Shown: in pieces, positions 37,001 through 43,000 of the stretch
Layout of the letters: every line of letters begins with the position of its first letter
Numbering within the stretch: the first letter of the stretch is position 1
Assembly: GCA_963924565.1 (NCBI GenBank)
Contig: OZ004615.1
Location: 7,874,001-7,938,000 of the forward strand
DNA: 64,000 nucleotides
Direction of reading: 5' to 3'
From: Ascidiella aspersa
Taxonomy: Eukaryota
Notes under the pieces: model-generated
The model's input: the letters and a program-made list of their open reading frames with translations, nothing else
The model's database searches: none
What the model was told of the DNA's origin: nothing
Made by a program: the position numbers and the translations under genes

Positions 37001-40000
37001 CTTCCCTGATTGGATTGGATCGCGAGATCTGAAATCAATTTAAATATATATAATAACGAATGTGAAAATCAGTGTTATAATGACCTAAGTGCACTTATGT
37101 CACTGATTTCAAATGACTAAAGTCACGGATTTCAAATGACTTGAGTTAAGTCATATGGGTAAATGACTTGACTTGACTTAAGTATTTTGAGCAAATGACT
37201 CGACTTAAGTTAAGTCTTTCGGAGGAATGACTTGGGTTAAAATAAAGTGTTTTAATTTAAAAAAAATAAATTTGTTTTAAAGATTTTTTTTATAAAATTG
37301 GGTTTCGTTTTATGATATGACTGGGACTTGACTTGTGGTTTAATGAAAAAGACTTGACTTGGACTTTATTCATTTTATAATGGCTTGACTTGGACTTAAT
37401 TTATTTTACAAATGACTTGACTGGGACTTAAGCCATTTCAACATGACAGGTTAACGACTCTTGTGAAAATACACTAGATGTTGTGTACTTCAATTTATAG
37501 TCAGCAAAACAAAATGCATTACAAAACAGTCAACCAATAAAAGAAAATCGCCCGAAACTGAACAGTTAACTTAAAAAACATGTATTGGTTATCCAAGTAT
37601 ATTATTTTTTACCTCATACTAGTTTTAAATAATACATTATGTAGCCCCTTATGGAGCACATAGTCTGCTTTTACGCAAAATACTTTTCAACACAACCTCG
37701 TGAGATCTTTTTCAATTTCAATTAAACTATAATTAGCTGCAATAAGTTTGGATTTTGTGTTTTCAAAAAAACCAATAGCGCTTTCACCACTAGCCTTAAT
37801 TCATTTTCAGTCAGGTTTTTGTAAAATTGATTTTGCACCTGGAACTATCTTCTGTATTTCGGCGCGTATTTTTTCGCCGAGGTCGGGATCCTTACTGCGC
37901 GGCTTCACCCAGCTCTTTTTGGCCGCCTCGACGCTCATGGCCTGGTACATCGGGCTCCGGTTCAAGGCCTGTTGGTCGGTTTTCAAATCAGAAATCCTGG
38001 CGGGCTCGCCGACTGTGGCTGACATCGAGGCACTTCGCGCAGTGAATGGCCGGCCGTTCATATGCGATGAGGGCAATGCAGTTGTAGATGATAAAGCAGC
38101 GGATGGCAAGAGTGCTTGAGGCTTAGGCGTTGAGGTCTTGACTTCGCTATCCCGAAACACAGGTTCAGTGTTCGCAATACTTTCACCTTTCAGAGGCTGG
38201 GTAGTGGAGCTGCCGAGGCTAGAAGGTAGAGAAGTGGCGGTCACGTCCCTAACGCGCGCTTTAGCGGCGCATACTGGTGGCGTAAGGGCTGAATTGGATC
38301 GCGACAGGGTACGACGCGCCCGCGGCACGTACTTCGTCGACGGTTTCGAAGCCTGACGAAACCAGTCGCCCGACTTTTTGTGCATCTCCAGGGTCTTGTA
38401 GCAGACGCGGCAGATCCACTCCGGTTCCCTGCCAGCGACGTTGGTGCGACGGACATTGGACCACGGCAGGTTGGGAAGAGCCCGAGCAAAGCGGGTGACG
38501 CTGGTGACGGAAGCGGCACTGACGTCCGACTTCACAGACTCAGCGTCTGACTTGTCCGCACTGGAGAATGTACGCGAAGCTGGCCTCCTCGGTATATAAA
38601 GACCTAGTGTAGGAAGCGCATCAAAGCTGCTTGCCCGTTTTATCGGTTTGCCAGTGTTGTCTTCAACCGCCTTTCTGCTTGCCGCACGCCTTTCGACAGC
38701 GCCGAACGTCCGTCCTGCTTTCTGAACAGGACTCCTCCTTAATCTGGAAATTTCGTCCGGGGTCATGTACCCGCTGTCCCGAGTTCCTTTGCGTTGAACC
38801 GGTTCTGCAGGTAAAACCACGTCGCCCCGTGGCGACAAAGCATCGCCGAAGTCTCGCTTGTCGACGCTTCTTAAAGGAGAACCGTCACTTTCGAGGTCCG
38901 CATCTTCAGCTCCGCTGTTACCGCGGGAATTTCTTTCCCCCTCTGAGCTATAATCACTCTCTTCAGTTTGAACCTCTTCTTCCTGGGTGCTGTCATCTTC
39001 ATTTACAGGCTCCCTTGGTCGGATAAAATCTCTGGGCTGGGATATTTCCATTGGCAGAGTGGCAAGAGAAAGGCTGGAAATAACGGAATCAGACAAAGAA
39101 TGATTCAACGAAGTGCTTTGAACCAAATTCTGTATCGGAGAAACAGTCCTTGAATTACTTTTCTCTGTTTTTATAACAGACGGTTCTTTCGTAGGAGTGT
39201 CCACCTCTTCTTCGATTTCCACAACCTCAATGTCTTCTCCACTTTCTTCCTCTGAAGCTTCCGTATATGTCTCGCTCCCACCTTCATTTTCAACCTCCTC
39301 ATCCGCGCTGACGTCAGCAACTGTGTCGTCATCGCTGCTCGCGGTGGGAGTGACGTTGGCGCTCCTTCGGTCAGTCGTCTGGTTGTCGGTGGCCGATTCT
39401 GTAGTCGTGTCCGTTTCCGTGGGAGTATCAGAGGCCTCGGACTCGCTCTTTGTCTTCTCAGCTTCTTCGAGCTTCTTTTGTTCGGCCTCTTTCGACTTGG
39501 CATCGTTTATCACCGTGATCGCAGGCGTCGGTTTCTGCAGGAAACTTAATGCCGGCATTTTTACGCGTTTGAGAGAGCTCCGCAGATCGGTGAAACTGGC
39601 CGACAGCAGCTGTTCGGTGGAGACCTTTTTATTATCCGTGACTTCGGATTCTTTGGTGCGACTAAAAATCGATCCGGAACCAAATTCCAGCTTCCGTCGA
39701 AACGAGGACCTAAGGGGGCTGCCTTTGCTGGTGGATCCCTGACCTGGTGGTTTGACGGAGCGTGGAGGGGTGACGCCTGCCATCATTAGGAAGCGGGATG
39801 CGCCGGCCGAGTCGGCCGATTTCAGTCCACCTGGCAGATTCGCCTTTGGTATCGTTCTAGGCTTAGGAGGGCTGCTCTGTGTTTCGACAAGATCTAGAGC
39901 TGTGTGGTTGGAAAGGAACGGGTTCAACTTGTCCGCTTCGTCCTCGTTATTTTCCTCCAGGAATGGGTTCAGTCGGTCGGAGTAAGATTTTCGCCGGCCG

Positions 40001-43000
40001 CTTGTTTGGATCGCGTCGACCGGGGGTGTCGGTGGGTCGACGTAGCCCTCCTCGAAAGGGTTAAGCGTCTCAGCCGGCTCAACTTTCTTCACAGTCGTAC
40101 CAGGACGAGGCCGCGCATTGGCGACGATGATAGGGGGTCGGGACGCTTCGGGCATCAGCGCGAACGCCCCTGCCACGTTTGCCGCCGACTCGAGAGCGCA
40201 AGCTGACGTCCGACGCTTCGGCGAGGTGGAATTTCGCCGATTGCGAAACACGTCGGCGTCCGGTTTATGCGTTTCGCGGCTTCCGGGCGACGAAAATGTG
40301 TTCGATCGTCTCTTCGTGCGCGCCGGGAACAAAAGTTGGCCAGATGGCGAAGGGGGCCTGGATCTAACTCGTGGTGGCCTCCTGGTTGTTGACGAATCAG
40401 AAGAGAGTGGTGCCCTCGGCGACGGAGGCTCGGCAACGTTTTCGACGCTCGACGGCGAGTTTGGAGTGCTTGGAGATCCTCTGCCGCAAGATGGGCAATG
40501 ACTGCAGTCGGCTCCTGTAGCGAGCTTGTGTACCCAGGTGATGTCGGTTTGCGTCACGGCGTCACTGCTGTTTTTTATCGGTTCGGTTGCGAGAGCTGTG
40601 ACGCTCGCCCTCGCCAGAGACGAGATTGTGTTTGGAGGCAGCACGGATCTCGCCGCAGGGTCACTTGAGGTCCTCATACGTCGAACATCCTCCGCCGCTC
40701 CCGAGAGCGCTCTCGCCTGCTCCCACTCGCTCCTCCACTTTTGCACACGGCACCGCTTGCACACCAGGTGCTTGCAAATAAAGCACCTCGCCTTCTGACG
40801 ATCGAGTTTTTCCGAGAGATCAAGCGGACCCTGACACCTGCCGCATCTCGAGTCCGGATTGCTGGTGTACTTGCGTCCCACCACCAGCGCTCCCATCCTC
40901 TTCTCCCGGATCAGATCCAGCCGCATCCGGACGATCCGCTCCTGTTCCTGTTCGCGCAAGTTTCGGTCACGGTTGAGGACGCCCATCACGTGATCGAGCT
41001 CGTTACGGTTCAGCTCAGATATGATGTTGTTCATTTTGTTGCTGTTGGTTTCCATTTTTGCTTTATTGCTTGCCTGTTTCGGTAAGATGACGTATCTTGG
41101 CTGGCTTCACAGGCAGCATTTCAATACGTTTTATTTTGTCTGGCTGCTATCCAGCCTCAAATGCAGCTTGGCCAGTTTTTAAGGTACCTTAAATCACAAA
41201 CTGTCAGACAAAAAAACATTGCTTAAAGCATAGTTTTGGCAAGTGGTAATATATAATTTTTTTGTTAGACGAATACAAGCGTTAAGGCTTAACAAGACAA
41301 GTTTCTGGATAGAGCTTGTCGGTTATAACATTCTAAGCCGCGTTCAGCAACTACATGAAAACATAATCAAACCCCGGTGACTTATCTAAAGTTTGAAACA
41401 AGCACTTTGTGTCACGTACTTCGGTATTGCAGTAAACTGCGAGGTAGACGTGTGCGGTCTTCACAGTTTGTTTTGTTAGCGGTAAGCTACATCCTAACAA
41501 TAACTAAATCGTGATCACTAAGTAGGTAACATGTCAAGAACTCTGACACCCATACACCCAACAAGCTAAAATTCGCATATAGCATAACATCGGTATACGC
41601 TGCGTTCACTTAAAATCGGTCACACTGTTGTATAAATACTTATTAGTTACTCACAAAACCTGATAGCTGTCCAGTACTGCTATTACCGCGATTTAGTAAG
41701 TTATGAAAAACCTAAACAGTAATCGAATAAGCTTGCGTCGCTTATGTATGTAAAATTAGATACTTCATGTAGTGAATTAAACAGAAGTGTCAACGACATG
41801 GTTTAGTTGGTTCAGTAGAGATACTAATATATAATAACGCATTTTGATTTCGGTTGCAAACGCAGCAGCTTGTAACAGGATGCTAGCCCTAAATATGCCC
41901 TGGCGTGGCATTACTGGTTCTTCCTGCGCTCAGCAATCAGTAATCACTCACAGCAGTTTAACATGAAATCAGTAACTCGAATAACGAATATAAACATCAA
42001 ATGACCCTTTTCCTACAACCGCTGTTGCGGATCGCGTTTTTTACTACATAAAACAACGAAAAAGTTCTTTAAAGGCAGGTAATATTGTAGTTTTTTTTTA
42101 ATTCTATGAATAGTGAGAAAACGCTTTGACTCCTAGAACTTCGTGCCTGTTATTTAACTTTATAAACCATCCCACTATGTGCATACGCAACTTGCATAAT
42201 GGCCCATAAACCACCATGAGATGAAGTAATTCGTTTTAATAGTAAAATCAGAAATGTTGGTCACTTTGTAAAAGCAGCCAACCATGTCCACACTTGACTG
42301 TTGGGCGTTGTTTTGCAATTGGCATGTTCTGTTTTCGAACGGGTGTCATGTGTCTTATATTGCTGATTGCAAAAGCACGTCTGTCAGTCGGCGAGAGATT
42401 AAATTATGTGAAAAAACGTCGCGACAACCATTACACAGGATGTTAGGAATGACGTTTTGGTGGTTTAATCTAAAACAATGGAAGCATCTTTTCGACCACT
42501 GCTGCACAGAGGGTTTCGCCAAGCCAAAGCGTCTATAACACTTTGTTAAACCCGCGGGGCGAGAGGCATTTTTGAAATGTTGATTATATCAAGACACCCT
42601 TGAAGCCTTCGCGTATTTTTTTGACAACCTTACACATTAATTACACGAATCTATGTATATAACGCTGAGAATTTGTAAAAGGTGAGATTGCTGTTCAAAC
42701 AAACAAAACCACTTTTTCAACTTGAGACAATACCAAAACTCGTTAGATCATATATATGATTTTAAAACAAAACAACGATGAGAGTTCATTAACCTTAGCA
42801 AATCACTTTGTCCCATATTTTTCATAAATACACCTGGCCTCAGATATAGCATAGCAGCTGTAATTGAACTGATAACTATATTGCGCGATTACACCCTTTT
42901 TAATCTATTTACCCTATTTAAAAACTAACGAGGAATTTATCGTCGACTGACCACGAAAACTAAATTTTACTGAATGTAACTCAGGCTAGTAATGTTGCCA

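Follow-up and report, generated by a model that had tools for sequence, protein, structure and literature searches.

In this work, we focus on an open reading frame (ORF) of Ascidiella aspersa that appears to carry a Rab-binding domain split by a very large insertion into its zinc finger. The ORF lies on the minus strand of a 64,000-nucleotide stretch of contig OZ004615.1 (GenBank assembly GCA_963924565.1, forward-strand positions 7,874,001 to 7,938,000); this whole stretch is what we call the window, and all nucleotide positions are counted from its first letter. A preliminary description made from the sequence alone had proposed that the SHD1 helix and three of the four zinc-ligand CxxC pairs of a FYVE_2-type domain stand near the N terminus, the fourth pair and the SHD2 motif coming only after several hundred residues. 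The elements that matter for this reading are the following.

37807..41055, minus strand: the whole open reading frame, 1082 codons and a stop.
40735..41016, minus strand: N half of the Rab-binding domain (residues 14-107), with the SHD1 helix and zinc-ligand pairs 1-3, as matched by Pfam FYVE_2.
38413..40749, minus strand: the insert (residues 103-881), between the last cysteine of pair 3 and the first cysteine of pair 4, mostly predicted to be disordered.
38359..38418, minus strand: the C block (residues 880-899), with W-I-C882-R-V-C885 (pair 4) and the SHD2 motif SGDWF (residues 895-899), recognised by our own profile and by conservation.

The frame opens with an ATG at 41055-41053, an in-frame stop is found 17 codons upstream (41107-41109), and the orthologous proteins begin at the same alignment point as the 1082-residue product. 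Its own genome contains one copy of the ORF, which is richer in guanine and cytosine than its surroundings (0.49-0.54 across the ORF against about 0.38). Its cysteines are residues 71/74, 91/94, 99/102, 184/187/190, 286, 882/885 and 929, so that the helix and the first three pairs (C71/74, C91/94, C99/102) stand exactly where they had first been placed. The same goes for pair 4 and SHD2 at residues 880-899, the gap from C102 to C882 being 779 residues rather than about 775. The end coordinate formerly given, 38359, is the last base of F899, and the ORF extends 183 residues further. We consider it likely that an unannotated animal Rab effector, of the Slp/Slac2 (FYVE_2) kind, has this ORF as its large first coding exon and that its Rab-binding domain is encoded in two pieces.

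On the whole protein, Pfam FYVE_2 (PF02318) scores 53.5 bits for a cut-off of 27.2, with residues 14-107 corresponding to positions 2-90 of the 118 in the profile; taken by themselves, the first 110 residues score 48.3 bits. Among the 23 proteins that an exhaustive phmmer search of 1.84 billion representatives returned at E<=1e-3, eight are full-length and 737-1150 residues long (P0001-P0006, P0008 and P0009), and P0007 is a 181-residue fragment of the same kind. All nine come from European Nucleotide Archive or Logan assemblies, and none of them has a name in the collections searched. The ORF product and the eight full-length relatives make up the nine proteins that we call the family. In every one of them, pairs 3 and 4 are 488-872 residues apart, whereas 13 of the other 14 matches have 8-17 residues between these pairs, the fourteenth being a fragment with two pairs only. 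The spacing of about ten residues that had been taken as canonical is thus roughly right, given these 13 contiguous relatives and a value of 25 in the contiguous paralogue of the same genome.

The second piece of the domain is recognised by a profile of the contiguous domain, which we built over 126 positions from six contiguous relatives and then ran on the intact proteins. In the ORF product, this profile matches residues 873-901 to its positions 93-121 with 17.1 bits, a score reached by none of 2000 shuffles of residues 111-1082 (maximum 2.6). All nine family proteins are matched twice, by an N piece of 49-65 bits covering positions 7 to about 100 and by a C piece of 17.1-25.8 bits covering positions of about 87-122, so that the two pieces occupy complementary and essentially non-overlapping parts of the profile. 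Contiguous Slp-type proteins compared with the window by tblastn gave the same two separated matches, the C block at E values of 5e-5 to 1e-3. Most of the features of a FYVE_2 domain can be read in the protein, namely SHD1 ahead of the finger, four CxxC pairs and [ST]GxWF just after pair 4; the one that departs from the type is the short loop between pairs 3 and 4, which has 779 residues here.

The conservation of the family follows the same division. The 28 invariant columns of a 10-row family alignment are confined to the two halves of the domain, the insert having none: they run from E19 to V104 in the N half and comprise W880, C882, C885, K887, K894, G896, W898 and F899 in the C block. The four CxxC pairs (C71/74, C91/94, C99/102 and C882/885) are invariant in every row. 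Group conservation is 0.70 in the N part and 0.78 in the C block, and 0.36 in the insert and 0.39 in the tail; identity to the ORF product amounts to 36-50 of 95 residues in the N part (38-53%) and to 11-17 of 26 in the C block. The orthologues thus keep both halves and vary in the insert, and the WICRVC/SGDWF block, whose loss would have spoken against the preliminary description, is kept in each of them. The further idea that annotation by hidden Markov models would miss or mis-call the ORF is not supported: 10 of 10 alignment members score far over the FYVE_2 cut-off, without matching any other Pfam family, the domain being reported as truncated at profile position 90. We did not use for folding a MAFFT alignment that mixed the family with contiguous relatives, as it set the relatives' pair 4 beside pair 3 and off the far block. 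A strongly basic helix, rich in arginine and lysine, is predicted in the shortest orthologue, P0003, upstream of its C block (residues 490-518, predicted local distance difference test (pLDDT) 76-94); the region aligned to it is present in most orthologues (P0002-P0009) and much weaker in the ORF product.

The 10-row alignment was also the basis of an AlphaFold2 (AF2) model of the ORF protein. This model is confident solely at residues 1-58, 68-110 and 877-901: it shows a helix in the N half (residues 17-56, pLDDT 70-86), short strands at 103-105 and 880-882 and a helix at 883-902, with pLDDT values of 78 and 62 in the C block, and outside these stretches only a helix at 413-425 rises above the general pLDDT of less than 50. 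Models were ranked against 48,161 chains with VIA-align. The first match is melanophilin bound to Rab27B (2zet_D, Z 7.5, root mean square deviation (rmsd) 3.9, 122 of 141 residues aligned, model residues 7..907), the second is rabphilin bound to Rab3A (1zbd_B, Z 7.1, 113 of 124 aligned, model residues 10..903) and the third is the Slp4 finger (5x6t, Z 5.5, rmsd 2.2, 53 of 53 aligned, model residues 67..892), while the fourth falls to Z 4.2. The alignment takes in the whole of 5x6t (53 residues), more than the confident N stretch past residue 67 can account for, so that part of this match presumably comes from the far block. For P0003, the best match of the AF2 model is again 5x6t (Z 6.5, rmsd 2.0, 53 of 53, model residues 60..594), followed by a RIM finger. 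Both AF2 models put the C block in the canonical position, rebuilding the predicted finger from both halves. A discontinuous fold, as first suggested, is thus supported in silico by the two-piece profile match, by the invariant columns and by the AF2 superposition on solved Rab-binding domains.

The insert itself is composed of 14% serine, 9% alanine, 9% proline, 9% arginine and 8% glutamate, and its AF2 pLDDT is below 50 over residues 111-417 and 429-876. Its frame is open in all nine family proteins. We also compared the window with the contigs of two DNA runs from the same species, the counts that follow being among the differences listed, with 26 further differences outside them. Synonymous variants make up 11 of 16 in the ORF and 8 of 11 in the insert, for an expected synonymous share of 0.24-0.29 (P of 2e-4 to 1e-3 for the ORF and of 1e-3 to 3e-3 for the insert). 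One of the runs has, in its contig, an in-frame insertion of three bases (ACG) at 40657 that the other does not have. Because the frame is open in all nine proteins and the variants are mostly synonymous, the insert is, judging from these sequences, coding. Three elements stand out within it.

39916..40062, minus strand: three NPF motifs (residues 332-334, 363-365 and 378-380), each followed by acidic residues, identified by motif count.
39775..39795, minus strand: RFLMMAG (residues 421-427), the sole conserved island within the insert, with a predicted helix.
38761..38778, minus strand: DSGYMT (residues 760-765), inside a 13-residue block common to the ORF product and P0001.

The NPF motif occurs three times each in the ORF product, P0001/P0025 and P0005, for a shuffle mean of 0.07-0.10 over these proteins and of 0.08 for the ORF product, and is found in none of the other six proteins; DSGY[MS]T is confined to the same three. 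The RFLMMAG region is helical in both AF2 models (helix 413-425 at a pLDDT of about 50 in the ORF product, helix 272-285 at 73-78 in P0003). We take NPF to be a ligand of EH domains and DSGxxT to be a degron-like motif. The suggestion that the loop acts as a scaffold is accordingly a plausible one, in view of the NPF triplets, the conserved RFLxMAGV helix and the DSGYxT motif, and we leave it at that strength. The insert also holds a CxxCxxC cluster (C184/C187/C190, residues 184-190, window positions 40486-40506), which is shared, as CxxC, with the closest relative P0001/P0025 only, in a similar DCxxC..G.GS context; from its sequence, it could be an extra metal site.

The ORF is surrounded by the exons of a gene of the MLCK/twitchin type, and all the recognisable exons around it are on the minus strand, as it is. 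The corresponding features are these.

48809..63732, minus strand: upstream I-set exons of the host gene.
37837..37839, minus strand: donor-like site CAG/GTGCAA at codon 1073 (GGT) of the ORF; the last exon base would be 37839, in phase 1.
36829..37028, minus strand: the next exon downstream, first half of an I-set immunoglobulin (Ig) domain (27.1 bits against a cut-off of 23.7).
36188..36341, minus strand: the second half of that I-set domain (profile positions 40-90).
28881..30531, minus strand: protein-kinase exons, N lobe (Pkinase, 48.4 and 22.7 bits).

Further I-set exons are found at 12.2-18.4 kb on the minus strand, and the best solved relatives of the kinase are MYLK4 (2x4f, 5e-15) and twitchin (1koa, 9e-14). 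Between the upstream Ig exons and the ORF, two minus-strand stretches without stop codons (50224-50859, 212 codons, and 45321-45776, 152 codons; GC 0.48-0.49) are without a Pfam match; they may represent host-gene exons that encode disordered linkers. A very high-copy interspersed repeat (37100-37480) lies in the intron that separates the ORF from the Ig exon, with a summed contig depth of 38,000-89,000 against 60-190 alongside and many internal joints; it took most of 50 RNA reads.

This setting raises the possibility, which we would entertain without favoring it, that the ORF is an alternative first exon of the Ig-kinase gene, spliced from 37839 to 37028 so as to give a Rab-binding domain followed by Ig, kinase and Ig domains; such a product would extend the two-piece Rab effector rather than exclude it. 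The ORF sits on the same strand between the I-set exons at 48.8-63.7 kb and the I-set and kinase exons at 28.9-37.0 kb, with its own ATG and its upstream stop, and the search of the window showed neither C2 exons nor exons of any other type. The conservation of the family ends exactly at the donor-like site, at the V-P-G of codon 1073, relatives ending in [VIL]-[PSE]-[GS] and then in unrelated tails of 3-31 residues; this site is the only one scoring at least 4/7 in the last 100 codons. The acceptor that precedes 37028 (tttcag/AT) is in phase 1, like the donor-like site, so that the join would be in frame, although a match of phases is expected by chance one time in three. An orthologous locus on a JGI contig (L006) has the same GTTCCAG/GTG, but tblastn detected no Ig exon there in the 1.7 kb downstream or in the 10 kb upstream, up to the contig end. 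On the 3' side, the 400 nt after the stop contain neither AATAAA nor ATTAAA, and the first polyadenylation hexamer comes at 401 nt; the read-through tail to the stop is, however, just 9 codons long, so that the true C terminus could be there. The donor GTGCAA is also weak (4/7 by a crude score) compared with the gtaagt of the neighboring exons. As for transcripts, in an RNA run sampled at about 6%, about five reads mapped to the ORF and none to the Ig exon, and junction reads were absent, at a coverage too thin to expect any; the first mates of the ORF reads are on the plus strand, the orientation that most stranded libraries would give for an RNA made from the minus strand. A further step, to which we give slightly less credit and which is put forward as tentative, is that an internal promoter in this MLCK/twitchin-type gene yields a Rab-anchored myosin light-chain kinase, whose finger with a loop of about 780 residues would dock on vesicles of the Rab27/3/8 type and bring the Ig and kinase domains to them.

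Coming back to the two-piece Rab-binding domain, one can propose how it would work. The chain would fold back on itself, with pair 4 closing the second zinc site next to pair 2 and SHD2 packing onto SHD1, and this would restore the usual surface to which a Rab of the Rab27/3/8 group binds. The insert would then hang from the vesicle-bound domain as a closed loop showing short binding motifs, namely the three NPF (candidate EH-domain ligands), the one conserved helix and DSGYMT. That the domain binds zinc and a Rab, which Rab this would be and what the loop recruits are points that we infer from the sequences and the models.

Several observations weigh against this reading. The C fragment of 70 residues, taken alone, gives no match to Pfam FYVE_2. 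On the structural side, the depth of the alignment given to AF2 is small, and the models are without zinc and without an estimate of the error between segments, with an overall predicted template modelling score of 0.25-0.30. All VIA-align Z values are below 8, a range that the tool rates as middling; the P0003 model reproduces the finger alone, 2zet and 1zbd being outside its top 50; and Foldseek found no match at E<=1e-3 in the PDB, its top rows being 2zet_C (0.014) and 1zbd_B (0.029). As to the loop, the NPF and DSG motifs are present in just three of the nine distinct proteins. Finally, the expression of the ORF is almost unseen in the RNA run.

One may thus ask whether the two halves ever reassemble. 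The N part could be a degenerate finger of three pairs and the WxCxxC...SGxWF block a separate relic or an independent motif, in keeping with a gap of 779 residues that has no precedent among the contiguous relatives seen, with fold evidence that is in silico only and of middling Z, and with a CxxCxxC cluster at 184-190 that could in principle provide other ligands. However, that cluster is common to P0001 only, while pair 4 and SHD2 are invariant in nine of nine proteins; moreover, the two pieces map to complementary profile positions and both AF2 models place the C block canonically. We therefore judge separate halves to be quite unlikely.

A somewhat more improbable explanation is that the insert is spliced out as an internal intron (exitron), leaving a contiguous domain in the main protein. 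Among the GT/AG pairs near the insert edges, 6 of 18 are in frame, and one of them, CGA/GTGGGA (codon 110) with GGCAG/GGA (codon 876), would shorten the loop to a normal length. This count of in-frame pairs is nevertheless the chance expectation, and every exitron site scores <=3/7. A shared acceptor would need the residues just ahead of W880 to be conserved, which they are not, and the insert behaves as coding sequence, with its open frame over 488-872 codons in nine proteins, its synonymous variants and its conserved motifs. As for a decaying or non-functional ORF, of pseudogene or repeat origin, to which the very low RNA support and the lack of named relatives could point, we reject it as extremely improbable, since the ORF is single copy with a synonymous excess, its frame is intact over 1082 codons and its N part keeps 38-53% identity across distant assemblies.

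The interest of a Rab-binding domain encoded in two pieces comes from the fact that the domain of Slps and rabphilin is regarded as a single compact unit some 120 residues long. In the conserved animal family described here, the zinc finger takes up 490-870 residues that separate the ligands of one zinc site, so that closing the domain must join chain ends lying hundreds of residues from each other. Should the domain fold and bind a Rab, it would offer a natural example of a very large disordered loop that a zinc site keeps closed, and zinc or Rab binding could then control the presentation of the loop motifs. Annotation pipelines would report FYVE_2 as truncated only, so that pair 4 and SHD2 would go unnoticed. 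If the ORF does join the kinase gene, it would connect Rab vesicles to the regulation of myosin in a new way, and a Rab-anchored kinase would couple the identity of the vesicle directly to local myosin activation.

Among known systems, the best solved relative is Slac2-a/melanophilin (2ZET, in complex with Rab27B), both by sequence (2zet_C, E 3e-5, residues 12-103) and by model (2zet_D). The likeness extends to the SHD1 helix, the finger (predicted here to be of the two-zinc type) and SHD2, but the melanophilin domain is contiguous whereas pairs 3 and 4 of the ORF product are 779 residues apart. The sequence match to melanophilin stops at residue 103, no similarity being seen past the Rab-binding domain, and, as to the myosin- and actin-binding regions that follow this domain in the Slac2 proteins (melanophilin, MyRIP), no Pfam family other than FYVE_2 was matched, in searches that short motifs could escape. 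The ORF model also superposes on rabphilin-3A (1ZBD, in complex with Rab3A), which is contiguous and has tandem C2 domains. The rabphilin motif is SGAWFF, the counterpart of SGxWF. In the 64-kb window, tblastn with five Slp-type proteins found the two Rab-binding pieces and no tandem C2 domains, its other matches being at E>1. The closest contiguous sequence relatives in the library are proteins of the Slp4/granuphilin type (for example P0010, P0012 and P0020); these have their pairs 3 and 4 at the short spacing given above, and P0010 has the long C-terminal part typical of Slps, whereas the split family has an insert of 488-872 residues and no detectable C2.

The same genome offers a direct comparison with its own contiguous paralogue, L002 (G000:C1:28854144-28857302), of the rabphilin/Slp type, which has the same WICK/RxC...KKSGxWF block and matches FYVE_2 positions 80-118. 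One exon of this paralogue encodes pairs 1-2 and the following one encodes pairs 3-4 with KKSGAWFF, so that the intron falls between pairs 2 and 3, and 25 residues separate pairs 3 and 4. Another FYVE_2-like locus of this genome, L004 (G000:C5:21380466-21380723; profile positions 23-107, 27.1 bits), is broken by one TGA and one TAA, and may be a broken copy or exons read through.

Vertebrate MYLK uses internal promoters to make long, short and telokin products, and, should the ORF be spliced to the kinase exons, it would resemble MYLK as another product started inside an MLCK-type gene. To our knowledge, no MYLK product starts with a Rab-binding domain. In the parts of the literature covered by our search, which include passages of 10.1101/591974 and PMC11231147, neither a split Rab-binding domain nor a Rab-binding MLCK is described. 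A figure legend of PMC11231147 does mention large loops in the FYVE_2 domains of SPIRE and RIM1, so that, going by this legend, loops within this domain type are already known; the passages of that paper covered here give no size or position for these loops and describe no insertion, several hundred residues long, that would separate the last two cysteine pairs. By its sequence, the domain of the ORF thus belongs with the Rab-binding domains of Slp, Slac2 and rabphilin, would work as they do, and differs from them in contiguity, which all of those have.

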